DNA from: Obrimoposthia wandeli
Lineage: Eukaryota
Length of the DNA stretch: 64,000 nt
Assembly (NCBI GenBank): GCA_977020255.1
Contig: CDROCS010000506.1
Coordinates: 1,178,001 to 1,242,000 of the forward strand
Direction of reading: 5' to 3'
In this document: positions 25,926 to 42,043 of the stretch, piece by piece
Numbering within the stretch: the first letter of the stretch is position 1
Layout of the letters: each line of letters opens with the position of its first letter
Translations under genes and position numbers: made by a program
The notes under the pieces: model-generated
Told to the model about the DNA's origin: nothing
Seen by the model: only the letters and a program-made list of their open reading frames with translations
The model's database searches: none

Positions 25926-26873
25926 CTATTTATTGTCAGCACGCAGCTCCGTTGCCGCTTCAAGCACTAGCTGACGGAACCAAATATGGCTGGCGTCATG
26001 ATGTAATAGCGGACTCCAGATCATCTTTAATTCAATGTTCGGGATCGGAAACGGTGGTTCCAGCAAAGTATAGCTGCTGTTATTTTTATGAACCAGTGCA
26101 GCTTGAGTCGGTAATGTCGCAATCAGTTCATCTTGCAACGCCAATTGCATCGCGACATTATAGTTACGCGTGAAAACCTTAATATCACGTTTCTTGCCTA
26201 AGCGATTCAGCGCTTCATCAACCCAACCTAATTTTTGCACATCATGCGGATTCATACCCACACCAACGCCAAAACCAGTCTTCGATACCCACACGTGTTT
26301 TGATGCTAAGTAATGATTCAAATTAAATTTATTTACGATCGGATTGTCTGCATTCATCATGCAGGTAAATGAATCATGCCATAAGGTTTTTTGATAAAAC
26401 GATTGTGGTAATTCATCAAAGCGGTTGATCGCCATATCAATCTTGCCTTCCTCTACATCATGGAAGGTCACATCAGACGGCGTCATAATATCGACAGTCA
26501 TGTTTGGCGCAACTTTACTTAACTTACTCAGCAGTCGTGGGATCAGCGTCGATTCGGCATAGTCACTGGCCATAATACGAAACACCCGATGACTACTTTG
26601 ATCAAATTCTTTTTCTTCTTGTAAGGCTTCTTCGAGTTCCAACAGTAATTTTCTGATCACCGGGGCTAATTTACGCGCCTTTTCAGTTGGGGTCATACCG
26701 CCAGAGGTGCGAACTAAAACAGGATCGTCCAGTAGAGTCCGTAATCGGCGTAAACCATTACTCATTGCTGGTTGGGTAATATTAAGCATACTCGCCGCGC
26801 GGGTAACGTTCTTCTCACGCAGTAGAACATCGAAGTAAATCAATAAATTAAGATCAATCCCTGATATATTCAT
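25926..26873 (-). CDS. LysR regulator divergent from aceA copy 1
   Basis: DLNLLIYFDVLLREKNVTRAA..L.ITQPAMS, DPVLVRT; NodD/LeuO-like substrate domain. Confidence 0.92.
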   Translation of the reverse strand: MNISGIDLNLLIYFDVLLREKNVTRAASMLNITQPAMSNGLRRLRTLLDDPVLVRTSGGMTPTEKARKLAPVIRKLLLELEEALQEEKEFDQSSHRVFRIMASDYAESTLIPRLLSKLSKVAPNMTVDIMTPSDVTFHDVEEGKIDMAINRFDELPQSFYQKTLWHDSFTCMMNADNPIVNKFNLNHYLASKHVWVSKTGFGVGVGMNPHDVQKLGWVDEALNRLGKKRDIKVFTRNYNVAMQLALQDELIATLPTQAALVHKNNSSYTLLEPPFPIPNIELKMIWSPLLHHDASHIWFRQLVLEAATELRADNK

Positions 26874-27023
26874 AAAATAAATACCTACAATAAAAATTTA
26901 ATAAAGCATTAATGAAACAGCACTAATTAAGCTATACAAAAGCTGACACATCGTCAAATACACCCATATTTAACCACTTCAACCAGAATACACCATAAAT
27001 AAGCTAAATGACCAGCCCTCTAC

Positions 27024-27038
27024 ATTCACAGTGTGAAT
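27024..27038. promoter_or_regulatory. Perfect palindrome, candidate LysR T-N11-A site
   Basis: ATTCACA-G-TGTGAAT between the divergent LysR gene and aceA. Confidence 0.55.
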
Positions 27039-27178
27039 GGTGACTATAAAAATTATAAACTAACTAAATATCAATTGAGCGTTTAATATTAACTCATCAA
27101 AACGCAAACGAATAAAAGGCTTTAGTCGCTGCGTTTCAATTTAATTAATCATCATTTGATCACTGAAAGGGATTTGCT

Positions 27179-28774
27179 ATGTCAACATACAACACTGATA
27201 TCGATTCGGTTGCTACACTGAAAGCTGAACAAGGTTCTAAATGGGCTGCAATTAACCCAGAATATACGGCGCGTATGCGTGCTCAAAACCGTTTTAAAAC
27301 AGGTATTGAAATTGCACAGTACACAGCAGACATTATGCGTGCTGATATGGAAAACTACGATAATGATTCTTCACTGTATACGCAGTCTTTAGGTTGCTGG
27401 CATGGTTTTATCGGTCAACAAAAAATGATTTCTATTAAGAAACATTTTGAAAACAATACTGACCGTCGTTATCTTTACCTTTCAGGTTGGATGGTTGCTG
27501 CATTACGCTCTGAGTTCGGTCCACTACCAGACCAATCAATGCATGAAAAAACATCTGTTTCAGATCTAATCGAAGAACTATACACTTTCCTACGTCAAGC
27601 TGATGCACGTGAACTAGGCGGTTTCTTCCGTGAACTAGACGCTGCAAGAAAAGCGGGCGATACAGCTAAAGCAGCTGCGGTACAAGACCAAATTGACAAC
27701 CATGTAACGCACGTTGTGCCAATCATTGCAGATATCGATGCTGGTTTTGGTAATGCAGAAGCAACTTACCTAATGGCTAAGAAAATGATTGAAGCGGGTG
27801 CATGTTGTATCCAAATTGAAAACCAAGTATCTGATGAAAAACAATGTGGTCACCAAGATGGTAAAGTAACGGTTCCACATGAAGATTTCCTAGCGAAAAT
27901 CAATGCTGTTCGTTATGCATTCCTAGAACTTGGTATCGACAACGGCGTTATTGTTGCCCGTACTGATTCATTAGGCGCTGGTCTAACAAAACAAATCGCA
28001 GTAACGAATGAAGCAGGTGACCTTGGTGACCAATATAATTCATTCCTTGATTGTGATGAGATCACAGAAGCAGAGCTAGGTAATGGCGATGTTATTCTGA
28101 AGCAAGACGGTAAGTTATTACGTCCTAAACGTTTACCAAGTAACTTGTTCCAATTTAAAGAAGGCACGGGTGAAGCACGTTGTATCCTTGATTGCATTAC
28201 ATCACTACAAGGCGGCGCTGATTTATTATGGATTGAAACTGAGAAACCACACGTTGGTCAAATCGGTGCAATGGTTAATGAGATCCGTAAAGTAGTACCG
28301 AATGCGAAACTTGTTTATAACAACTCGCCATCATTCAACTGGACACTTAATTTCCGTCAACAAATCTTTGATATCATGGTTGAAGCAGGTCAAGACGTTG
28401 CAGCATATGACCGTGCAGACTTGATGAATGAGAAATACGATACAACTGAATTATCAATCCAAGCTGATGAGAAGATCCGTACATTCCAAGCTGATTCAGC
28501 ACGTGAAGCAGGTATCTTCCACCACCTAATTACGTTACCAACTTACCATACAGCTGCGCTATCAACTGATAACCTAGCGAAAGAGTACTTCGGTGACCAA
28601 GGTATGCTGGGTTATGTTAAGGGTGTTCAACGTAAAGAAATCCGTCAATCGATTGCATGTGTTAAGCATCAAAACATGGCTGGTTCTGATATGGGCGATG
28701 ACCATAAAGAATACTTTGCTGGTGATGCAGCATTGAAAGCTGGCGGCGAAGATAACACGATGAACCAGTTCTAA
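27179..28774 (+). CDS. aceA: Isocitrate lyase, 531-aa type, copy 1
   Basis: YLSGWMVAA, PIIADIDAGFG, QIENQ, KQCGHQDGK catalytic loop, WIET, YNNSPSFNW. Confidence 0.96.
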   Translation: MSTYNTDIDSVATLKAEQGSKWAAINPEYTARMRAQNRFKTGIEIAQYTADIMRADMENYDNDSSLYTQSLGCWHGFIGQQKMISIKKHFENNTDRRYLYLSGWMVAALRSEFGPLPDQSMHEKTSVSDLIEELYTFLRQADARELGGFFRELDAARKAGDTAKAAAVQDQIDNHVTHVVPIIADIDAGFGNAEATYLMAKKMIEAGACCIQIENQVSDEKQCGHQDGKVTVPHEDFLAKINAVRYAFLELGIDNGVIVARTDSLGAGLTKQIAVTNEAGDLGDQYNSFLDCDEITEAELGNGDVILKQDGKLLRPKRLPSNLFQFKEGTGEARCILDCITSLQGGADLLWIETEKPHVGQIGAMVNEIRKVVPNAKLVYNNSPSFNWTLNFRQQIFDIMVEAGQDVAAYDRADLMNEKYDTTELSIQADEKIRTFQADSAREAGIFHHLITLPTYHTAALSTDNLAKEYFGDQGMLGYVKGVQRKEIRQSIACVKHQNMAGSDMGDDHKEYFAGDAALKAGGEDNTMNQF

Positions 28775-28806
28775 TAACCGTTTAGACACGCATTATTTAG
28801 AATGAT

Positions 28807-28869
28807 TTATCAGTTAAAATAGCAAGTCAGTAAATATGAAAAAACCAGCCTCGGCTGGTTTTTGCGTTT
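28807..28869 (+). terminator. 3' tract with terminator, shared with aceA copy 2 (37300-37363, reverse)
   Basis: TTATCAGTTAAAATAG(C/A)AAGTCAGT(A/T)AATATGAAAAAACCAGCCTCGGCTGGTTTTT. Confidence 0.85.
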
Positions 28870-28872
28870 CGA

Positions 28873-28920
28873 GACCCCTCATCCAGCCTCAACCCCTTCG
28901 TTAAAAAGGGGGAGCTAAGA
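28873..28920 (+). repeat. Degenerate GC-rich REP-like palindrome
   Basis: ACCCCTCATCCAGCCTCAACCCCTTCGTTAAAAAGGGGGAGCTAAGA, similar to 37381-37422. Confidence 0.65.
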
Positions 28921-29057
28921 GATGAAATAAAAACAAGATCAAAAACATCAACAGGTGCAGACTGTCAGTTGAGGTTGGCTTGATTTGCAACAGAAATCAG
29001 CTTGCCTGACGAAGAACATTTAACGCTAAATAAAATTTGTAATTGGTAGTTTGTTTA

Positions 29058-29097
29058 GTCCCCTCCCCTTGTTTTAAGGGGAGGGTTAGGGTGGGGT
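29058..29097 (-). repeat. GC-rich REP-like palindrome
   Basis: Reverse strand ACCCCACCCTAACCCTCCCCTT-AAAAC-AAGGGGAGGGGACT, starting at the stop codon of the MltA-like gene. Confidence 0.75.
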
Positions 29098-30225
29098 TTA
29101 TCTTTTATCTTTCAACAATAATATCCGCGCTTCAAAATAGTCAGGAAATGTTCTGTAGGTATTAATATAGTCATCCCAGTTTTTGAAGTAACCACCAAGG
29201 TAATCAAGCTGGTATTGGTTATTCTCAAATGCGCCGCCCGTGTCTGCTAATACGGTTAAACGACTTTCGCCATTGTGGGTCAACATAATGAGTTTACCCA
29301 AACCTAGGTGAGCGAGATCGCCTGCTACTGTGACTAATGGATAAACAGGGATCTTATAATTAGCATCTTTACCGTATCCCATAACCGACTCGGTTTTCTT
29401 GAAGTACCAATAACGCCCCTGATCCTCTTTCTTTAAATTACGTTTATAACCAATGCCGTTATTACGGTGTACGTTAAAGAACTGACTGGTAATTACTGGG
29501 CTGTTTTTATTAGTAATGTCGACTTTGACAGTGCCCTGCATTAACGAATCTTCTAAATCATAACGCGATAGCCACACCATCGGCTGGGCTAATTTATCTT
29601 TATCCAAAATGCCGGTGATGACATCTTGCTTAGTCAGTTGGTGACGGGTCAAACTCGGATCAGCATCAGCTTGCTCAAGCGAGAGAGCTTTTTCATCATT
29701 CGGAATGGCATATAACGCATAAGGGGTTTCAGGCGTTTGCTTTGCCGTTCCCTTCGCGAGTTTTATATAATATTTGGTCAGTAAAATTTTATCGTCAGGA
29801 ATATTTTTCAACAGCGGTTTATCTTTAGCAAAGCCCTGCGCTTGGTTTTTATCTGGCATCCAGCGGATCACATCAAAGTGCTTGGCAATAAAATCGGCAT
29901 CCATTAAACGGCTTTCAGTACCCGCTAATTTATCTTCTTGCTCTACTTGGCAAATAAAATTAAGGGTACGTTTTACGCGGTCTAAATCGCCACCAAATTG
30001 CGCAGTGATACCAGCGGTGATAATACCGGGATCATAATCTTCCCCCAAATTAAGGTAATCCACAGAACCTTTGGCAACTTCACACAGTTCAGCGTTAGAT
30101 GACGTCACCATTTCACCAATTTCAGGTTTGGCCTCTAATTTAAAAATAGGATTTACAGCCACGTTCGCAGCAGCGTTAAACGCCACCAGCAAAGTTAAAG
30201 GTAATAATGCACTTAGTTTCATCAT
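29098..30225 (-). CDS. MltA-like (3D-domain) lytic transglycosylase
   Basis: LTKYY, SLMQG, NGIGY, TVAGD, LADTGGAF...QLDYLGG resembles the MltA DxGGA...D catalytic region; cleavable-type signal peptide. Confidence 0.7.
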   Translation of the reverse strand: MMKLSALLPLTLLVAFNAAANVAVNPIFKLEAKPEIGEMVTSSNAELCEVAKGSVDYLNLGEDYDPGIITAGITAQFGGDLDRVKRTLNFICQVEQEDKLAGTESRLMDADFIAKHFDVIRWMPDKNQAQGFAKDKPLLKNIPDDKILLTKYYIKLAKGTAKQTPETPYALYAIPNDEKALSLEQADADPSLTRHQLTKQDVITGILDKDKLAQPMVWLSRYDLEDSLMQGTVKVDITNKNSPVITSQFFNVHRNNGIGYKRNLKKEDQGRYWYFKKTESVMGYGKDANYKIPVYPLVTVAGDLAHLGLGKLIMLTHNGESRLTVLADTGGAFENNQYQLDYLGGYFKNWDDYINTYRTFPDYFEARILLLKDKR

Positions 30226-30451
30226 TTTAACGATCTCGATATTCGAAAATAAACAGCTAATATTAATTATATCAACATTAAATATTCCCGTATTCACAAC
30301 TTACAAATGTACATTTATTACTCTGACGTAAATCAAAACGGCAAATTTAAAACACAAGTCTGTAATGTAAACCAAGCAAAATATAAACTCTAGTCACTAT
30401 TTTCGGCAATCGTCGTTAAATCTGCAGACATCTATTAATTAAGGTAACGGA

Positions 30452-31330
30452 ATGCATTTCTTAATCATTACAAATTTAGTATGGGCTTTTTCATTTAGTC
30501 TTATCGGGGTTTATTTATCCGGTCAGGTTGATGCTTGGTTCTCGGTATTATTCCGTATCGGTTTAGCTATGTTGGTCTTCATCCCATTTTTACGCCTGGG
30601 CAACCTCGCTCGCTCGACCATTATTAAAGTCATGGCTATCGGTGCTTGTCAGTTAGGTATTATGTATGGTTTCTATTATCAATCGTTCTTATTATTATCC
30701 GTGCCTGAAGTACTGCTATTTACGGTGTTCACGCCTATCTATGTAACCTTAATTGATGACTTATTACATTCACGCTTCAGCCCTTGGTATTTAGGTACAG
30801 CGCTTATCGCTGTACTCGGTGCTGTGGTAATTAAATATGCAGGTATTAACGAAGGTTTTGTTATCGGTTTCTTAGTTGTGCAAGGCGCGAATATTGCCAT
30901 GGCGATTGGCCAAGTGGCTTACAAGAAATTATCAGAAAACGAATTAAAAGACGTTAAACATCGTGACGTATTTGGTCTGTTTTATATTGGCGCATTCCTG
31001 GTTGCTGCAATCGCATTCATGTTACTAGGTAGCACTGAAAAAATGCCAACGACCACAACACAATGGGGCGTATTAACTTACCTTGGTATTATCGCTTCAG
31101 GTTTAGGTTACTTCATGTGGAATAAAGGCGCATGTTTGGTTAATGCCGGGACATTAGCGGCAATGAATAACGTACTTGTACCATTAGGTTTATTGGTTAA
31201 CTTAGTTATTTGGAATCGTGATGCGGACTTAGTGAAACTGGCATTAGGCGGTAGTATTATTATTCTGTCATTGGTATTTAATGAAACTGTGGTTAAGAAG
31301 CGCGTGTCACAAAAGGCACCAGCACTGTAA
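30452..31330 (+). CDS. EamA/DMT transporter, YigM (BioP)-like
   Basis: WAFSFSLIG.YLSGQVD.WFSVLFR, QLGIMY, LFTVFTPIYV, GLGYFMWNKG. Confidence 0.8.
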   Translation: MHFLIITNLVWAFSFSLIGVYLSGQVDAWFSVLFRIGLAMLVFIPFLRLGNLARSTIIKVMAIGACQLGIMYGFYYQSFLLLSVPEVLLFTVFTPIYVTLIDDLLHSRFSPWYLGTALIAVLGAVVIKYAGINEGFVIGFLVVQGANIAMAIGQVAYKKLSENELKDVKHRDVFGLFYIGAFLVAAIAFMLLGSTEKMPTTTTQWGVLTYLGIIASGLGYFMWNKGACLVNAGTLAAMNNVLVPLGLLVNLVIWNRDADLVKLALGGSIIILSLVFNETVVKKRVSQKAPAL

Positions 31331-31491
31331 CTATTAGTGCTAATTCAGTAAGCACTAATACAGCAGACAAGACCCGCGAATAACGCAAAACCAAGGTGAT
31401 GATCCTAGCCCATTACATCGCCTTGGTTTATTCTCTATAAATTACATTATATTCTCTGCTACAATCCTCTTTTTATACGCAAGCAGATCCT

Positions 31492-32385
31492 ATGTATTTT
31501 TTACTCCCGCTATTCACGGTTATCATCTGGTCAGGCAATTCAATTGTTAATATTTTATCGACCAATGTGATCGCACCCGAAACGATTTCTTTCTATCGCT
31601 GGTTCATTGCCTTAATGACGCTTACGCCTTTTCTAATCAAACCAGTATGGAAAAAACGCCATGCAATTAAACCTTATTTACCTAAGCTAGCATTCCTCGC
31701 CTTACTGGGCATGGCGATTAATCAATCCCTAGCCTACTTTGCTGCGGCGACAACGACAGCAACTCACATGACGTTAATTTTTGCCTTAGTCCCTTTGCTA
31801 AGCTTGATGTTTAGCGTGCCGATACTCGGGCTGACATTAACTAAAAAAGCCTTGTTTGGTGCGATGATTTCACTGACAGGTTTAGTGTATATGCTGAGCC
31901 ACGGTAAAATCAGTAACTTGTTATCAGAAGGCATTAACATTGGCGATACTTACATGCTAATTGCAGCGTGTAGTTACTCTCTGTACGGCGTATTACTTAA
32001 ACGCTGGCGCCTACCGTTCAATAACTGGATCGCGCTGTATGTGCAGATGGTATTTGCAGTAATCATCTTATTACCAGTATTGACGTACCACGGCCAAGTC
32101 AGCCTAACTACTGAGTCACTCCCCTTGGTACTATATGCCGCAATACCGACGTCAATCTTAGCCACTTGGTTATGGATGCAGAGTATTCAACATCTTGGCG
32201 CAGATAAATCGGCAATGTTCATGAATCTATTACCGGTATTTACCGCAATCATGGCGACCTTTATTCTTAATGAACAGCTATCAAGTGAACAGTTTATTGG
32301 CGGTGGATTGGTACTTACAGGTGTGGCGATGACGCAGTTTAAATCGAGAAAGGCAGTCAAAAAAGAAGTGGTTATTCCGTCTTAG
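31492..32385 (+). CDS. EamA/DMT transporter
   Basis: Ten hydrophobic segments, IWSGN, FYRW, W...IQHLGA, FMNLLPVF, LNEQL. Confidence 0.88.
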   Translation: MYFLLPLFTVIIWSGNSIVNILSTNVIAPETISFYRWFIALMTLTPFLIKPVWKKRHAIKPYLPKLAFLALLGMAINQSLAYFAAATTTATHMTLIFALVPLLSLMFSVPILGLTLTKKALFGAMISLTGLVYMLSHGKISNLLSEGINIGDTYMLIAACSYSLYGVLLKRWRLPFNNWIALYVQMVFAVIILLPVLTYHGQVSLTTESLPLVLYAAIPTSILATWLWMQSIQHLGADKSAMFMNLLPVFTAIMATFILNEQLSSEQFIGGGLVLTGVAMTQFKSRKAVKKEVVIPS

Positions 32386-32416
32386 CAGTTATTTAGTTTT
32401 ATAAATGACGAGTACG

Positions 32417-32442
32417 AGTAACGGACTAGCTTTAGTCCGTTA
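32417..32442. terminator. Hairpin between the convergent EamA gene and metC
   Basis: GTAACGGACTA-GCTT-TAGTCCGTTAC. Confidence 0.7.
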
Positions 32443-32472
32443 CTTCTCATTATGTTCAGTAACGCTGAATAG

Positions 32473-33657
32473 TTAAAGTCGCGCAAAACCCGCTTCTAAA
32501 TCAGCAATCAAGTCTGCTACATCTTCCAAACCTATGTGTAAACGCACTAGCGTACCAGTGAAATCTACATCTCCAGCAGGTCGAATACGATTCAACTCTG
32601 ACGCTTGATTCGCCAAGATTAATGACTCATAACCGCCCCACGAATATGCCATGCTAAAATGGGCAAAGTTATCTAAATAGTTAGCCATTTGCTCATTACT
32701 TAATTTGTCTTTTAAGATAAACGAGAACAAACCATTACAGCCATTAAAGTCACGTTTGTAGAACTCATGGCCTTTACAGCTTGGTAATGCTGGATGATTA
32801 ACGCGTTCAACTTCTGGACGAGCGCTTAACCAATTTGCAACTTCAATACTGGCTTTTTCATGCTGCTTTAAACGAATACCCATAGTGCGTAAACCACGGC
32901 TCGCCATGTACGCTGTATCAGCATCAACCATTTGCCCCATTAAGTAGGACTGTTCACGTAATTGTGCCCAGCAGCGCTCATTAGCAACTGCAGTACCTAA
33001 CATATAGTCTGAATGACCAATGATGTATTTCGTACCCGCTTGAATTGAGATATCAATATCATGTTCAAGTGCTTTAAATAACACACCCGCTGCCCACGTA
33101 TTATCCATCATGATAATCACTTGTGGGTTTACCGCGCGCACGGCTTTTACAATCGCAGGAATATCTTGCACTTCCATGGTCACCGAACTTGGTGACTCTA
33201 AAAATACCACGCTAGTATTTGGTTGCATTAACGCTGCAATGCCCTCGCCTAACATAGGATCGTAATACGTCGTTGCTACGTTCATTTTAGCTAACATCAC
33301 ATTACAAAAATCTTGCGTTGGTTCATACGCTGCACCAGTCATGAGGATATGCTCACCCGCGCTTACAAATGACAAGATAGAGTTAGTCACAGCGGCCGCA
33401 CCACAAGGATAAAGTGCGCAACCTGCACCACCTTCTAGTTCGGTCATCGCTTCTTGTAAAGAGAAATGCGTTTGGGTACCACGGCGACCATAAAAAAGTT
33501 CACCGTCTGCACGTTTCACTGTCGCTGCTTTTTTTGCTTTAACTGATTCAAATACAATGGATGATGCGCGCTGAACAACAGGGTTAACTGAACCGTGTGA
33601 GAATTTTCTGTCGCGTCCTGCTGATACCAACTGTGTGGCTAATTTGTCTGAACTCAT
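32473..33657 (-). CDS. metC: Cystathionine beta-lyase
   Basis: [29 protein letters not shown] (PLP Lys), [22 protein letters not shown]. Confidence 0.95.
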
Positions 33658-33754
33658 AGTAATGTCTTTCCCTGATTATGCTTGGTCATCATGTCAATAT
33701 AAAAACACAGTAACGAAAGATACTAATCCAAGCAATAAATAATTCCCCATAAAA

Positions 33755-33792
33755 ACAAAACCCCCGCCTATTTAAATAACAGACGGGGGTTT
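33755..33792 (-). terminator. Terminator after the alanine/glycine symporter
   Basis: AAAACCCCCG...CGGGGGTTT stem. Confidence 0.7.
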
Positions 33793-33809
33793 GGGTATTA
33801 TTAATTCAA

Positions 33810-35171
33810 TTACTCTTTCGCAGCATTACCTTGCTTGGCAAAGTACTCTTTCGTTAACTTAAATACCACAGGGCTAAGCAGCGCCAGTGCGATCAAGTTA
33901 GGCAGTGCCATCATCGCATTAAGCGTATCAGCCAACAACCAAACGAAACTGAGTGAACTTGTCGCGCCAATTGGCACTGCAATGATCCACAAGATACGGA
34001 ATGGTACAATCGCTTTCACGCCAAATAGATACTGCACACATTTTTCGCTGTAGAAACTCCAGCCAAGGATCGTAGTGAACGCAAATACCGACAGTGCAAT
34101 AGCAACGATGTAGTTACCAATGCCAGGTAATGCACTCGCAAACGCAGCAGATGTTAATGCAGCGCCTGTTTCACCCGATGTCCACGCACCTGATACCACA
34201 ATAGCCAGACCAGTGATGGTACAAACAACAAGCGTATCAATAAACGTACCTAACATAGCGATAAGACCCTGTTTAACCGGATCATTAGTTTGAGCAGCAG
34301 CATGCGCAATTGGCGCGCTACCTAAACCAGCTTCATTAGAGAATACACCACGTGCGACACCGAAACGAATAGCAGCCCAAACAGCAGCACCAGCGAAACC
34401 GCCTTGTGCAGCAACAGGACTAAATGCGCTTTCAATGATTAATGAAAATGCAGCAGGGATCTCGCTCGCATTCATCGCTAATACAACAACACCAGCACCG
34501 ATATAGAAGATAGCCATTAGCGGCACTAATTTACCAGCAACATCAGCAATACGCTTAACGCCACCCATTAGCACGAGACCAACCAATACCATCATCACTA
34601 AACCAGATACAATTGGTGCAATACCAAAACTACTTGATAAAGCGTCAGCAACTGAATTTGACTGTACTGTGTTACCAATACCAAAACCAGCAATTGAACC
34701 AAAGATAGCAAACGCAGTACCGAGCCAAGCCCACTTACTGCCTAAACCATTTTTGATGTAATACATTGGACCACCAACGTGGTTACCATTGGCATCCGTT
34801 TCACGATATTTAACCGCACAGACTGCTTCAGCATATTTCGTTGCCATACCCACTAACGCAGTACACCACATCCAAAATAACGCGCCCGGTCCACCTAAAA
34901 AGATAGCCGTTGCAACACCAGCAATGTTACCAGTACCGATAGTCGCAGAAAGCGATGTCATTAACGCATTAAACGGCGATATTTCACCTTTGTCACCGGC
35001 ACTCGTTTTTCGTCCCGCCCAAAGTAATTTAAAGCCAGTACCTAATTTTAAAATAGGCATTAATTTCAGTCCCAAGGATAGGTATAGTCCTACCCCAAGA
35101 ATCATGACGAGCATAGGTACACCCCACACGACACTATTTACCGCAGAAATAAAATTTGTTAAAGCTTCCAT
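33810..35171 (-). CDS. Alanine/glycine:cation symporter (AGCS family)
   Basis: ATIGTGNIAGV, GGPGALFWMW, GGPMYY, RGVFSNEAGLGSAP, FIDT. Confidence 0.93.
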   Translation of the reverse strand: MEALTNFISAVNSVVWGVPMLVMILGVGLYLSLGLKLMPILKLGTGFKLLWAGRKTSAGDKGEISPFNALMTSLSATIGTGNIAGVATAIFLGGPGALFWMWCTALVGMATKYAEAVCAVKYRETDANGNHVGGPMYYIKNGLGSKWAWLGTAFAIFGSIAGFGIGNTVQSNSVADALSSSFGIAPIVSGLVMMVLVGLVLMGGVKRIADVAGKLVPLMAIFYIGAGVVVLAMNASEIPAAFSLIIESAFSPVAAQGGFAGAAVWAAIRFGVARGVFSNEAGLGSAPIAHAAAQTNDPVKQGLIAMLGTFIDTLVVCTITGLAIVVSGAWTSGETGAALTSAAFASALPGIGNYIVAIALSVFAFTTILGWSFYSEKCVQYLFGVKAIVPFRILWIIAVPIGATSSLSFVWLLADTLNAMMALPNLIALALLSPVVFKLTKEYFAKQGNAAKE

Positions 35172-35570
35172 CTACATCCCTTCCTTAAGATTTACAATTC
35201 TGACAACGCACATTATCAGGCTAAATATTCAACAAACAGATAAACATAATACCCACAACTGTTTAACATGCAACCAAGTGCTGATAAATCAAGGCAGTGA
35301 AACATAATATTTCAAATGAAAATATCACTGGTTATCATCATAAAATAATTTATAGCATGTCAAAAAAGCGAGCTCGAAGCCTACCAGAGCTGGATTTATA
35401 AAAAATAACACCCTGTTTTATAAATAACTCCTTGTGGTTAGTAAAAAAAGTTAAAAAAAACAAAAAATAAACATCTAGTTAACAGTTCAAGTACGACAAT
35501 ATATAAAATTTTATAAAAAAATGACTTAATAAGACATGTTGTTATTTTTAATGGATCACAAGGTTAGGCC

Positions 35571-37271
35571 ATGAATAATTTAAGAATGCAGAATAAATTA
35601 CTACTGATTGCTATAGTTCCCATGATTATTGCGCTATCAGTTGCACTCGCAATCATCGCTAATTTACAAGCTAAATCAGTCACCAGCATGATCAATAACC
35701 ACGAATCTCTGTTACTTGGCGAACGCCAGAAACAAATCAGTGATGCCGTAAAAATAACGCAAAAAATAATACAACGACAAATGACCATCGCCTCAGCGAA
35801 CAATCTAAATCAACAGCAAAATCTAGCCGATGTACGCGATCTACTTAAACAAGCTCGTTATGGCGACAAAAGCCTCGGTTATTTCTTCATTTATGACAGT
35901 AAAGGTATCAATATTGCCGATGCTTCTAACGATGCTAATCAAGGCCAAAACCGTTTCGCACTGCAAGATAAAAATGGCGTAATGCTGATCCAAGAGCTCA
36001 TCAAGGCAAGCCAATCTGGTGGTGGTTTTGTTGAATATGTTTACCCTAAGCCAGGTACCGATTCACTGCAGCCAAAATTAAGTTATTCAGCGCCAATAGT
36101 CGGTACAGATTGGTTCATCGGCACAGGCGTTTACATTGACGATATTGACAAAGACTTAGCGATCTACAGCGCTTCAGCATGGCAACAACTTTACACACAA
36201 ATACAATACGCGGTTATCAGTGCAGTCGTGATCGTGATCCTCACCAGTTTAATGATGTTATGGATAGCGAAACGTGTTGCTAACCCAATTAACGATATGC
36301 TCAACACCCTCAATGACATTGCTGATGGCGAAGGTGATTTAACCCGCCGCTTAGAAGTCAAAGGCAGTGACGAGATAGCCCAACTGGGTAATGCCTTTAA
36401 CCGATTTACATCGAAATTACAGTGCATTATCAGTTCAGTGGCCGATGTCACTCGCCAAGTCACAGATTCAGCGAGTAGTTTAAGCCTGCAGACGCAAAAA
36501 ACCACAGCGCAACTTACCATTCATAATAATGAAACAGACCAAGTCGTTACCGCGGTGACGCAAATGAATGCCACTGCCAATGATGTCGCTGAAAATGTAA
36601 TCCAGGTCGCAGATGCTACCCAATTAGCAACGCAAGATTCGCTATTGGCGCAAGACAATGTTTCAACATCGAATAATGCCATTACGAACTTAGTTGATAA
36701 CGTCGAACAAGCCAGTGGCCACATGAACTCATTACATGAGCAATCACAAAAGATTGATCATGTATTGCAAGTGATTGGTGCGATTGCCGAACAAACGAAT
36801 CTGCTCGCACTCAATGCCGCGATCGAAGCGGCAAGAGCTGGTGAACAAGGCCGAGGTTTCGCAGTGGTTGCTGATGAGGTGCGTAGCTTAGCCAGTCGGA
36901 CACAAGACAGCACATTAGAAATTAAAGTCATGCTTGATGGTTTACATGAATTTGTCGCCAAAGCAGTAAGTGCGATGAAAACCAGCCAAGAAACCAGTGC
37001 CCATGTGATGCAATCATCGACGCAAATCAGCGGGAGTTTATCTGCTGTTACCGATGCAGTGGATGGTATCAATGATATGACGACACAGATTGCCACCGCC
37101 GCGACAGAACAAAGTTCAGTCAGCGATGAAATAAACCGTAACATGATCAACATTCGCGATGTCGTTACCCAGTTATTAGCATCAAGTCATGAAACGACAC
37201 AAGTTTCTACTGACTTATCAGCAGCTGGTGAGGAATTGGAATTATTATTAGGTCAGTTCAAACTCGAATAA
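35571..37271 (+). CDS. Methyl-accepting chemotaxis protein with a Cache sensor domain
   Basis: TM-Cache (YFFIYD, GGGFVEY.YPKP)-[40 protein letters not shown]. Confidence 0.95.
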
Positions 37272-37299
37272 CGCTTCCAGATCGTTATTTACACATACA

Positions 37300-37363
37300 A
37301 AACGCAAAAAACCAGCCGAGGCTGGTTTTTTCATATTAACTGACTTTCTATTTTAACTGATAA
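37300..37363. terminator. Bidirectional terminator for the MCP gene and aceA copy 2; homologous to 28807-28869
   Basis: AAAAAACCAGCCGAGGCTGGTTTTTT. Confidence 0.85.
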
Positions 37364-37380
37364 TAAAATAGTAACTCTCT

Positions 37381-37422
37381 TGCTCCTCCCCCTTTTTGCA
37401 GGGGGAGGCTGGGAGGGGGTTA
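37381..37422 (-). repeat. GC-rich REP-like palindrome
   Basis: Reverse strand TAACCCCCTCCCAGCCTCCCCCTGCAAAAAGGGGGAGGAGCA, just after the aceA2 stop. Confidence 0.75.
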
Positions 37423-37429
37423 TAATCAG

Positions 37430-39025
37430 TTAGAACTGGTTCATCGTGTTATCTTCGCCGCCAGCTTTCAGTGCTGCATCACCAGCAAAGTATTCTTTAT
37501 GGTCATCGCCCATATCAGAACCAGCCATGTTTTGATGCTTAACACATGCAATCGATTGACGGATTTCTTTACGTTGAACACCCTTAACATAACCCAGCAT
37601 ACCTTGGTCACCGAAGTACTCTTTCGCTAGGTTATCAGTTGATAGCGCAGCTGTATGGTAAGTTGGTAACGTAATTAGGTGGTGGAAGATACCTGCTTCA
37701 CGTGCTGAATCAGCTTGGAATGTACGGATCTTCTCATCTGCTTGAGCTGACAATTCTGTTGTATCGTATTTCTCATTCATCAAGTCTGCACGGTCATATG
37801 CTGACACGTCTTGGCCTGCTTCAACCATGATATCAAAGATTTGTTGACGGAAATTAAGCGTCCAGTTGAATGAAGGCGAGTTGTTATAAACAAGTTTCGC
37901 ATTCGGTACTACTTTACGGATCTCATTAACCATTGCACCGATTTGACCAACGTGTGGTTTCTCAGTTTCAATCCATAATAAATCAGCGCCGCCTTGTAGT
38001 GATGTAATGCAATCAAGGATACAACGTGCTTCACCCGTGCCTTCTTTAAATTGGAACAAGTTACTTGGTAAACGTTTAGGACGTAATAACTTACCGTCTT
38101 GCTTCAGAATAACATCGCCATTACCTAGCTCTGCTTCTGTGATCTCATCACAATCAAGGAATGAATTATATTGGTCACCAAGGTCACCTGCTTCATTCGT
38201 TACTGCGATTTGTTTTGTTAGACCAGCACCTAATGAGTCAGTACGAGCAACAATAACGCCGTTGTCGATACCAAGTTCTAGGAATGCATAACGAACAGCA
38301 TTGATTTTCGCTAGGAAATCTTCATGTGGAACCGTTACTTTACCATCTTGGTGACCACATTGTTTTTCATCAGATACTTGGTTTTCAATTTGGATACAAC
38401 ATGCACCCGCTTCAATCATTTTCTTAGCCATTAGGTAAGTTGCTTCTGCATTACCAAAACCAGCATCGATATCTGCAATGATTGGCACAACGTGCGTTAC
38501 ATGGTTGTCAATTTGGTCTTGTACCGCAGCTGCTTTAGCTGTATCGCCCGCTTTTCTTGCAGCGTCTAGTTCGCGGAAGAAACCGCCTAGTTCACGTGCA
38601 TCTGCTTGACGTAGGAAAGTGTATAGTTCTTCGATTAGATCTGAAACAGATGTTTTTTCATGCATTGATTGATCTGGAAGTGGACCGAACTCAGAGCGTA
38701 ATGCAGCAACCATCCAACCTGAAAGGTAAAGATAACGACGGTCAGTATTGTTTTCAAAATGTTTCTTAATAGAAATCATTTTTTGTTGACCGATAAAACC
38801 ATGCCAGCAACCTAAAGACTGCGTGTACAGTGAAGAATCATTATCGTAGTTTTCCATATCAGCACGCATAATGTCTGCTGTGTACTGTGCAATTTCAATA
38901 CCTGTTTTGAAACGGTTTTGAGCACGCATACGCGCCGTATATTCTGGGTTAATTGCAGACCATTTAGAACCTTGTTCCGCTTTTAATGTAGCAACCGCAT
39001 CGATATCATTTGTGTATGTAGACAT
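37430..39025 (-). CDS. aceA: Isocitrate lyase, 531-aa type, copy 2
   Basis: Same motifs as copy 1; six amino-acid differences; follows aceB. Confidence 0.96.
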   Translation of the reverse strand: MSTYTNDIDAVATLKAEQGSKWSAINPEYTARMRAQNRFKTGIEIAQYTADIMRADMENYDNDSSLYTQSLGCWHGFIGQQKMISIKKHFENNTDRRYLYLSGWMVAALRSEFGPLPDQSMHEKTSVSDLIEELYTFLRQADARELGGFFRELDAARKAGDTAKAAAVQDQIDNHVTHVVPIIADIDAGFGNAEATYLMAKKMIEAGACCIQIENQVSDEKQCGHQDGKVTVPHEDFLAKINAVRYAFLELGIDNGVIVARTDSLGAGLTKQIAVTNEAGDLGDQYNSFLDCDEITEAELGNGDVILKQDGKLLRPKRLPSNLFQFKEGTGEARCILDCITSLQGGADLLWIETEKPHVGQIGAMVNEIRKVVPNAKLVYNNSPSFNWTLNFRQQIFDIMVEAGQDVSAYDRADLMNEKYDTTELSAQADEKIRTFQADSAREAGIFHHLITLPTYHTAALSTDNLAKEYFGDQGMLGYVKGVQRKEIRQSIACVKHQNMAGSDMGDDHKEYFAGDAALKAGGEDNTMNQF

Positions 39026-39109
39026 TTTTATTCCCTTAATAATTATTTTAATACTTGATACAACAAGAACACAGCGGGATAAACTAACCCCGCCCTATTC
39101 CAAAAATTT

Positions 39110-40726
39110 CTAATCTAAGAAATCGTAACCTGGAAGGGTTAAGAACTCAGCAAGATGATCACTGGTTGTTAGCTCTTCAAACAGTTTTGATGCTTCAGCA
39201 AAACGGCTATTTTCGTAAGCTTCAACACCAATTTCTTCATCGCGAATAACCACAAGTTCTTCTTGTAATAATTGGCAGAACAATTCTTTAGTCACAACTT
39301 TACCGTTGCTTAATGTTTTGCCGTGTTGGATCCACTGCCAAATTGATGCGCGAGAGATTTCAGCTGTTGCCGCATCTTCCATTAGGCCGTAGATAGGCAC
39401 ACAACCATTACCCGAGATCCATGCTTCTAAGTAACGAACACCAATACGGATATTTAAACGCATGCCTGTTTCAGTACGTTCGCCATCACACGGTTGTAAT
39501 AATTCAGCCGCAGTAACAGGTGCATCATCTGCACGACTTACTTGAAGTTGGTTGGCATTACCTTCACCAATGTATTCGTTCATCACGCCCATCGCTGTAT
39601 CAGCAAGACCAGGGTGAGCAACCCAAGTACCGTCATGACCATTTTGTGCTTCTAAGGTCTTATCTGCGGTTACTTTGGTTAATACTTTATCGTTTTCTTC
39701 TGCTGTTTTAGCTGGAATAAATGCAGCCATACCGCCCATAGCAAGCGCACCACGTTTGTGACATGTTTTGATTAACAAACGTGAGTAAGCGCTAAGGAAA
39801 GTTTTATCCATCGTTACTGAATGACGATCAGGCAGTACACGGTCAGCATGCTTACGCAGTGTTTTAATGTAGCTAAAGATGTAATCCCAACGACCGCAGT
39901 TAAGGGCAACAATGTGCTCTTTCATGCTATATAGAATTTCTTCCATTTCAAATACAGCTGGGATAGTTTCAATCAGTAGTGTTGCTTTGATCGTACCGCG
40001 ATCTAGGTTTACTTTATCTTCTGCATAGCTAAATACTTCACTCCACCATTTAGATTCGTGATGGCTTTGTAATTTAGGCACATAGAAATAAGGACCAGCG
40101 CCTTTCGCTAACAATTCTTCGTAGTTATTCGAGAAGAATAGTGCGAAATCAACCAAACAACCCGGTACAATTTTACCGTTAAAAGTGATGTGTTTTTCTG
40201 GTAAATGCAGACCACGTACACGACAAATAAGCGTCGCAGGATCTTCATCTAAAGTATAGTGTTTGCCGTTAGCAGGGTTGGTATATTCAATAGTCCCGTT
40301 TACAGCATCACGTAAGTTAACTTGTCCATCGAGTACACCCGCCCAAGTTGGTGCGAATGAATCTTCAAAGTCAGCCATGAATACTTTAACGCGTGCGTTG
40401 AGGGCGTTGATCACCATTTTACGGTCAACTGGACCAGTAATTTCTACGCGACGGTCTTGTAGTTTTGCAGGGATACCTTGAATCTGCCAATCACCTTCAC
40501 GGATATGGGCAGTTTCAGGTAAGAAATCTGGTAATTCGCCAGCATCCATACGCGCTTGTTTTTTCACACGTTGGTTTAGTAACTCATCAACTTGAGGAGC
40601 GAACTTTTCGACTAACTCAGTCAACAAAGCAACTGCTGCAGGATTTAGGATCTGTTGTTGTTCTTGGTTGATTTCCCCATGGAAAATCAGAGAACCTGTT
40701 TCATGAGACTGGGTATTGGCAGTCAT
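39110..40726 (-). CDS. aceB: Malate synthase A
   Basis: DRRVEITGP, MADFED, RVRGLHL, LNCGRWDYIFS, GGMAA, DGTWVAHP, LMEDAATAEISR. Confidence 0.97.
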   Translation of the reverse strand: MTANTQSHETGSLIFHGEINQEQQQILNPAAVALLTELVEKFAPQVDELLNQRVKKQARMDAGELPDFLPETAHIREGDWQIQGIPAKLQDRRVEITGPVDRKMVINALNARVKVFMADFEDSFAPTWAGVLDGQVNLRDAVNGTIEYTNPANGKHYTLDEDPATLICRVRGLHLPEKHITFNGKIVPGCLVDFALFFSNNYEELLAKGAGPYFYVPKLQSHHESKWWSEVFSYAEDKVNLDRGTIKATLLIETIPAVFEMEEILYSMKEHIVALNCGRWDYIFSYIKTLRKHADRVLPDRHSVTMDKTFLSAYSRLLIKTCHKRGALAMGGMAAFIPAKTAEENDKVLTKVTADKTLEAQNGHDGTWVAHPGLADTAMGVMNEYIGEGNANQLQVSRADDAPVTAAELLQPCDGERTETGMRLNIRIGVRYLEAWISGNGCVPIYGLMEDAATAEISRASIWQWIQHGKTLSNGKVVTKELFCQLLQEELVVIRDEEIGVEAYENSRFAEASKLFEELTTSDHLAEFLTLPGYDFLD

Positions 40727-40882
40727 AGTTTCACTCCGTTGAAATATGTGTATTGACTACAATTCGACACTATTTAAACGCTGGAAAAATAACGCCCCAA
40801 TGTTTTAAACATGTGTACGAATTGCTTTCTCTATCTACACATTGCAACAAGTTAACCACAAATGCAACATATTTCACACTAA

Positions 40883-40895
40883 TGACACAGTGTCA
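40883..40895. promoter_or_regulatory. T-N11-A palindrome upstream of aceB
   Basis: TGACAC-A-GTGTCA. Confidence 0.4.
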
Positions 40896-41002
40896 AATTA
40901 TGGTTTTTCACTTTCTTAAAAATCAGCGAAGAATGAAGTGAATAGTGACATTAATAGTGAAGTAAAATGTACTTTCATATGAAGTCGACATTAACCATGA
41001 AA

Positions 41003-41908
41003 TTAGCTGATTGTTGATGTAACCCAATCCGTTACATCGTTAAATACCGCACTCGCATTCGATTCATTCAGCATCTCGTGACGACCATCAGGGTAAAGCT
41101 TACATTGTACATTTTCACAACCATTCGTTGTAATGTGCTGCTCTAATGCTAATACGCCTTTGCCTTGTAAACCGACCGGATCTTTATCACCACTAAAAAT
41201 ATAAATCGGTAACTGATTTGGTATCTTAGCTATCTCTGATTTTTGGCTGATCGTAATTAATCCCGACATAAAATCGAGCCAAAATTGTGGCGAGCATGGA
41301 AAACCACAATAGTCATCATTGATATATTTATCGACTTGTACGGGATCACGGCTTAACCAGTCTGATGCGGTACGTGTCGGTTTGAATTTACTATTGAAGG
41401 CGCCAAATGACACAAAATCTAGAAAACGACTTGGCGAGCGCGCACCAATACGCATTTTTTCAATTTGACTGGCCAAGCTTGCCAATTTATATAACATTGG
41501 ATTTTGGTAATTAGAGCCACTAAGTATTAAGCCACTCAATTTATTACCATGTAAGATCGCATATTGCTGTGCAATAAAAGATCCCATGCTATGACCAAAT
41601 AACACCAGCGGCGCAGCATGACGCTTCGCCACATCATCAACGATAAGATCTAAATCACTGATCACTTTCTGCCAACCATTATCATCGGCGTAATGGCCTA
41701 ATACAGGTGCATCGTCCCCATGACCACGGTGGTTAGCACCATACACTGCAATACCAGCGGCATTACACGCCAAGGCAAAACTGGCATAACGCTGGATATG
41801 CTCAGCCATACCGTGGCTTAATACCATCACGTAACGGATTTCTTGCTCTGGTAACCAAGCAAATAATTTTATCTCGCGACCATCAGCGGCTGTCAGTACA
41901 GAATGCAT
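41003..41908 (-). CDS. Alpha/beta hydrolase (lysophospholipase-like)
   Basis: HGMAEH, NHRGHG, GHSMGS, SGDKDPVG, RHEMLNE. Confidence 0.9.
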   Translation of the reverse strand: MHSVLTAADGREIKLFAWLPEQEIRYVMVLSHGMAEHIQRYASFALACNAAGIAVYGANHRGHGDDAPVLGHYADDNGWQKVISDLDLIVDDVAKRHAAPLVLFGHSMGSFIAQQYAILHGNKLSGLILSGSNYQNPMLYKLASLASQIEKMRIGARSPSRFLDFVSFGAFNSKFKPTRTASDWLSRDPVQVDKYINDDYCGFPCSPQFWLDFMSGLITISQKSEIAKIPNQLPIYIFSGDKDPVGLQGKGVLALEQHITTNGCENVQCKLYPDGRHEMLNESNASAVFNDVTDWVTSTIS

Positions 41909-42043
41909 CCCTATATCCTTATCAATTAATACCCGTTCAGTTAATGACACATATACTCGCATGCTGACCTGGCTTGTAAAGCAAAATTAATCTGCCATGC
42001 GATTTCATCGTCATTGTAATTACATTTGTGTGAGAAACAAAAA

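Follow-up and report, generated by a model that had tools for sequence, protein, structure and literature searches.

Two nearly identical genes for isocitrate lyase (ICL), here called aceA1 and aceA2, face each other within a 64,000-nucleotide stretch of bacterial DNA (the window; positions 1178001-1242000 of contig C506). From the comparison of their sequences with those of related genomes, we consider it very probable that they descend from an old inverted duplication of the ICL gene that is present throughout the genus, places the two copies under two controls, and has been homogenized time and again by gene conversion. The contig, 3.78 Mb in length, carries at least 16 16S rRNA genes and belongs to a 1.35-Gb assembly of many bacteria. 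An order-level search for relatives yielded 13 species genomes with 93-99% transketolase identity, which together make up one genus and the entire family. We take this genus to be Moritella, a presumed name with which the 41% G+C content and the single-genus family are not at odds. A first placement, next to a Colwelliaceae relative, was discarded; the identity of the 16S rRNA gene did not exceed 91% in 220 genomes of this family, and the best malate synthase A match reached 67%.

The inverted arms (27167-28774 and 37430-39037) span 1608 nt, are 98% complementary and enclose 8655 nt, with the aceA genes facing inward (Table 1). Both genes are 1596 nt long and differ by 30 substitutions (98.12% identity), 21 of them at third codon positions. 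Six substitutions at the protein level result (N5T, T6N, S10A, A23S, A408S and I427A), four of them in the first 23 residues. This recount reproduces exactly the size, the approximate number of substitutions, the 98% identity and the six amino acid changes given in a preliminary description of the region. The same description had reported a shared terminator tract of 63 bp; the tract exists, but its length is 57 nt, and its two copies are 96% alike. The homology between the copies starts essentially at the ATG, upstream of which only the sequence AAGGGA, resembling a ribosome-binding site, is common to both, and it continues beyond the stop codon into the common terminator. The spacer between stop codon and terminator measures 32 nt at copy 1 and 66 nt at copy 2, the latter with a hairpin resembling a repetitive extragenic palindromic (REP) element. 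A related REP-like hairpin occurs past the terminator of aceA1 (28880-28915), and in the relative G500 it lies past the terminator at both copies.

We observed signs of the two-locus aceA layout in all 13 species genomes of the genus. Seven assemblies contain both junctions on a single contig (the window, G500, G582, G458, G405, G537 and G595), and these share the arrangement lysR<>aceA1> <hyp399, eamA, eamA, <metC, <agcS, (mcp>) <aceA2 <aceB <hydrolase, where hyp399 encodes a 399-aa protein that is the inner-side neighbor of aceA1 in all seven. In the six assemblies other than the window, the aceA copies lie 11-44 kb apart, and inserted cargo accounts for this spread. Two further genomes provide partial evidence, with one junction each: in G519, where the copies are on two contigs, mcp adjoins aceA2-aceB, and in G435 hyp399 adjoins aceA1-lysR across a scaffold gap of N. 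The short-read assemblies G553, G568, G607 and G479 end at the repeat, with lysR and aceB present at contig ends. Similarly, the eight metagenome loci reached through the hyp399 protein all stop inside or before aceA and are uninformative on orientation.

Outside the genus the pair was absent from the loci compared. Among 301 genomes sampled from the order, this type of ICL was found in 78, and two matches were found only in the seven genomes of the window's genus. Among the 80 top-ranking ICL loci in a scan of species genomes, from which the window's own genus was apparently left out and which returned other families, no product exceeded 85% amino acid identity and no locus had a second aceA within 10 kb. 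The lysR<>aceA pairing was found in 15 of these 80 loci, including those of Colwellia, Shewanella and Porticoccaceae. In the Colwellia-containing family, 12 outgroup loci with malate synthase A (L090-L101) were compared: lysR stands beside aceB in 9 of them, the start of aceA comes after lysR in L090, and aceA was not found behind aceB in any of the 12 within the stretch examined. The compact cluster of the Alteromonadaceae type, aceB> <lysR aceA>, is composed of the same families (malate synthase A with 65-67% identity, LysR with 66-70%, and a subfamily-3 ICL). It has a single aceA beside lysR and none behind aceB, whereas the genus of the window adds a second aceA behind aceB and has the two halves split by the segment. 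This compact single-aceA cluster is probably the ancestral state of the split two-copy layout.

The relationship between the copies was analyzed with full-length aceA1/aceA2 pairs from eight genomes (the window, G500, G582, G458, G405, G537, G595 and G519). Within each of the eight genomes the copies showed 97.7-99.6% nucleotide identity, whereas orthologues from different species showed 74-97%. The synonymous divergence (dS) was 0.008-0.097 between paralogues versus 0.14-0.56 between orthologues; therefore, selection at the protein level cannot explain the likeness of the copies. In a maximum-likelihood tree calculated from nucleotide 61 to the end, the copies paired by genome, with ultrafast bootstrap values of 99-100 for six pairs and 98 for that of G500. 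The G519 copies were neighbors but did not resolve as a pair, so that seven of the eight pairs were recovered at 98-100. The beginning of the gene behaves differently, and only the first ~30 nt retain locus-specific differences common across species. At position 6, every one of the eight aceA1 genes has A and every one of the eight aceA2 genes has T; positions 8, 15 and 28 mostly vary with the locus as well, in both of the allele types described below. Five of the 30 differences in the window are of this old locus-specific kind. Since these 5' sites are common across species, the duplication predates the radiation of the genus; the gene body has been homogenized repeatedly, and the 5' edge largely escapes conversion. 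This edge effect is what the quantitative model of Salmonella tufA/tufB describes, in which the conversion frequency drops near the gene ends (PMC5485169).

The remaining differences also carry traces of exchange. The 30 differences of the window are clustered (permutation P<0.0002) and leave identical runs of 353, 326 and 267 nt. For 18 of them both alleles occur in other species, mostly with both copies of a genome agreeing; for example, at sites 1221-1222 and 1279-1280, aceA1 matches G458/G405 and aceA2 matches G500/G582. Such differences look like patches that allelic recombination may have introduced at one locus and that have not yet been copied to the other.

Two very different allele types are found in the genus. 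The ICL genes of G537, G595, G519 and G435 (type II) are about 75% identical, in nucleotides and in amino acids, to those of the window, G500, G582, G458 and G405 (type I), while the lysR and aceB flanks of the type II genomes are still 95-98% identical to those of the window. The first ~90-130 nt are genus-specific, with 90% identity between the types and 55-60% to outgroups; from about nt 135 on, type II is as distant from type I as it is from other families; and the final ~40 nt of the two types are alike again, as judged by eye within the genus. A divergent body between alike ends indicates that in one of the types the gene body has been replaced. In the 301-genome sample the best match outside the genus was 79%, and no donor of type II was found. 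Both loci of every genome carry the same allele type; of all the observations, this one points most strongly to the copying of whole-gene tracts from locus to locus.

As to the mechanism, a break or gap in one aceA copy would be mended by RecA-dependent homologous recombination with the other copy as template, and the conversion tracts would seldom extend to the edge of homology. The products of crossover, in which the segment is inverted, would be rare or removed by selection. Several points weigh against this proposal. Recombination in this organism is deduced from the comparison of sequences, and the RecA dependence would be carried over from the Salmonella tuf system. Plain conversion predicts that some species should be flipped, and none is, so that an added assumption is needed, either selection on orientation or a bias toward non-crossover repair. 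Finally, the full-length pairs come from eight genomes only.

The orientation of the inner segment was compared directly. In the seven full and the two partial assemblies the hyp399 end lies at lysR-aceA1 and the metC/agcS (mcp) end at aceB-aceA2. With a neutral and randomized orientation, agreement in eight independent cases would be expected with a probability of about 0.004, a rough figure since the species are related. Besides, the inner segment and its flanks agree in the sign of their GC skew, which is weak evidence against a recent flip. Accordingly, a fixed or frequent inversion is not supported by the compared genomes. The preliminary description had proposed a potentially invertible segment; its premise held, in that the copies are substrates of homologous recombination that were repeatedly converted across the genus, but inversion itself gained no positive support, and the single orientation among genomes speaks against a fixed or common one. 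This leaves two options: conversions far outnumber crossovers, or selection acts against the flipped form. No reason for selection on orientation is visible in the gene content of the segment; its genes are divided between the leading strand (about 3.7 kb) and the lagging strand (3.5 kb), with the direction of replication inferred from rRNA operon orientation and skew. On the contig, the 16S rRNA genes switch strand between 2.04 and 2.10 Mb, and the replication origin is probably there.

The copies exchange sequence often enough to remain 98-99.5% identical, and yet no genome had the segment flipped. A more far-reaching possibility, which we regard as speculative and rather unlikely, is that its orientation is selected for a reason that the gene content does not reveal, or that in this lineage such repair is almost free of crossovers; alternatively, inversions may persist in populations as a minority form that makes hybrid aceA alleles. 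Linked to this is the idea that a foreign ICL, about 25% divergent, replaced the gene body at both loci in one clade. If true, body replacement at both loci would show that whole-gene conversion can be primed by conserved ends of only ~100 nt.

It could also be that the segment flips at an appreciable rate through RecA-mediated crossover between the aceA genes, giving two forms of the chromosome as well as hybrid alleles in the population. The substrate is adequate, with 1.6-kb arms at 98% identity and the unbroken identical runs mentioned above (267-353 nt); the copies have clearly recombined many times; and both genes and promoters would survive an inversion intact. Moreover, as stated in PMC5485169 with reference to Hughes 2000, almost half of the Salmonella tuf conversions that were selected at a single site were accompanied by inversion of the DNA between the genes, a coupling that makes the inversion idea reasonable in principle. 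Nevertheless, the uniform orientation in the nine assemblies, a segment with neither a recombinase nor short recombination sites, and the finding of no alternative contig with a near-identical aceA in the window's own assembly make this explanation improbable.

Less probable still is the idea that the copies are alike without conversion, through purifying selection or codon bias, or through repeated independent transfer into both loci. ICL is indeed conserved (83% amino acid identity to other families), and allelic recombination between lineages seems real, considering the imported-looking patches and the two allele types. However, the synonymous divergence between paralogues is approximately 2- to 60-fold below that between orthologues, and to explain matching loci in eight of eight genomes, separate imports into each locus are a much less parsimonious assumption than copying between the loci. 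Although 98% identity by itself resembles a young duplicate, a recent strain-specific duplication that has since diverged by 2% is hardly credible, given that both loci, with their differing flanks, occur throughout the genus, that the 5' differences are common to several species, and that the alleles at 18 of the 30 differing sites recur in other species and so are not private mutations. The chance that a single gene was assembled twice is equally negligible: the aceA repeat does interrupt short-read assemblies of the genus as well as metagenome contigs, but the copies differ at 30 sites, have distinct flanks and lie on a 3.78-Mb contig, and both were also found on a single contig in six independent assemblies, which upholds the two-copy state that the preliminary description had weighed against misassembly.

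The two copies differ in their outer neighbors. Across the genus the products of lysR and aceB are 92-99% and 95-100% identical in amino acids, respectively. The 40 nt before each aceA start are near-invariant across the genus, with a few single-base differences at aceA1 (27139-27178) and one A/G difference at aceA2 (39026-39065), and these stretches are wholly different between the two loci. This conservation suggests that distinct control elements may operate at aceA1 and aceA2. Given that aceA1 lies behind its own promoter, divergent from lysR, and aceA2 is distal behind aceB, one enzyme would be placed under two controls. Malate synthase G was not found in five genomes of the genus that were searched for it; therefore, the two ICL genes serve one malate synthase.

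Table 1. Features of the aceA inverted repeat, the segment it encloses and its outer neighbors (positions in the window).
Feature	Position	Strand	Evidence or remark
LysR-family regulator (lysR), divergent from aceA1	25926-26873	-	Pfam HTH_1 and LysR_substrate
aceA1, ICL subfamily 3, 531 aa, left arm	27179-28774	+	NF005074 (PRK06498), 1052.1 bits vs cut-off 446, with residues 1-531 aligned to profile positions 1-530 of 531; repeat search
Common 3' flank with bidirectional terminator hairpin, copy 1	28807-28863	.	Repeat search, terminator scan, alignment to G500 flanks
399-aa protein (hyp399), no assigned family, weakly MltA-like	29098-30297	-	MltA insert domain below threshold
EamA/DMT transporter 1	30452-31330	+	TIGR00950, PF00892
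EamA/DMT transporter 2	31492-32385	+	PF00892, 1.7e-37
metC, cystathionine beta-lyase	32473-33657	-	NF005990, 754.5 bits vs cut-off 634
AGCS family Na+/alanine-type symporter (agcS)	33810-35171	-	TIGR00835, 511.5 bits
Methyl-accepting chemotaxis protein (mcp), sCache_2 sensor, inner neighbor of aceA2	35571-37271	+	Pfam sCache_2, HAMP, MCPsignal
Common 3' flank with terminator hairpin, copy 2	37307-37363	.	Repeat search, terminator scan, alignment to G500 flanks
66-nt spacer with REP-like hairpin (CCCCCTCC...AAAAAGGGGGAGG) between aceA2 stop and terminator	37364-37429	.	
aceA2, ICL subfamily 3, 531 aa, right arm	37430-39025	-	99% amino acid identity to aceA1
84-nt aceB-aceA2 spacer, hairpin at 39073-39094	39026-39109	-	
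aceB, malate synthase A, immediately 5' of aceA2	39110-40726	-	TIGR01344, 803 bits vs cut-off 594.5

The enclosed genes correspond largely to those listed in the preliminary description. NCBIfam and Pfam matches identified the two EamA transporters, metC, the AGCS symporter and the chemotaxis protein, but the gene described as MltA-like has only a sub-threshold match: the hyp399 product matches the MltA insert domain with E 0.0034 (17.9 bits, cut-off 24.3) and has no NCBIfam or Pfam match at E<=0.001. The statement that the segment lacks a recombinase was borne out, since none was found with NCBIfam and Pfam among the open reading frames of at least 100 aa in 25926-41962, where all but one unknown protein could be assigned. 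An Rfam scan of the window gave no match at threshold. For the chemoreceptor encoded at 35571-37271, the best NCBIfam match is to CtpM, by which Pseudomonas aeruginosa senses malate, with 441 bits, under the cut-off of 900; a sensor of C2-C4 carboxylates adjoining genes of the glyoxylate shunt would make sense.

The space between the aceA copies gathers cargo across the genus. G500 has an SPFH/NfeD pair adjoining aceA2, and several relatives have a similar-sized unannotated gap there, while the window has neither. The inner cargo of G458 includes an M20 peptidase, two ATP-grasp enzymes and an M14 carboxypeptidase, that of G582 a CS1-type pilus usher cluster, and the inserts of G537 and G405 reach 25-33 kb.

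The closest known system is the tufA/tufB pair of Salmonella enterica and E. coli (Abdulkarim & Hughes 1996; Hughes 2000; Paulsson et al. 2017). Like aceA1 and aceA2, the tuf genes are inverse, near-identical protein-coding paralogues in different operon contexts, stemming from an ancient duplication and subject to gene conversion that is weaker at the gene ends and works without a dedicated recombinase. In contrast, aceA encodes a metabolic enzyme and tuf a translation factor; the aceA copies are 9-44 kb apart and the tuf genes hundreds of kb; the aceA pair is confined to one genus and known from comparing sequences; and the inversions that accompany tuf selections were seen in no genome here. 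Inverted repeats also flank a DNA segment in the Hin, Gin, Cin and FimB/E systems and in shufflons. However, those site-specific systems have repeats of tens of bp, a linked recombinase and coexisting orientations, whereas the aceA repeats are 1.6-kb genes with no recombinase and one orientation. The aceA pair is thus not an invertible-segment system in the site-specific sense.

A genome-wide survey of long-lasting concerted evolution (PMC6053082) reports 26 genes and employs the same diagnostic as we did, the synteny of both loci together with clustering of paralogues by species, synonymous sites included. The terms "isocitrate" and "aceA" do not appear in the main text of that survey, and the window's genus is not among the orders in the portions of its Table 1 that were examined. 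Full-text literature searches turned up no publication that deals with ICL duplicates in Moritella or with gene conversion among bacterial ICL copies.

These results have a practical side, in that short-read and metagenome assemblies break at the aceA repeat, and ICL phylogenies or copy counts taken from such assemblies will mislead. The pair also represents a useful test case, with inverted copies 9-44 kb apart and a visible edge of homology that escapes conversion, an orientation that is fixed in spite of the coupling of conversion and inversion in tuf, and two very different allele types that each fill both loci. Gene conversion between duplicates is a known process, of which aceA1 and aceA2 are a new instance, and they offer a clean natural example of the long-term concerted evolution of a bacterial metabolic gene.

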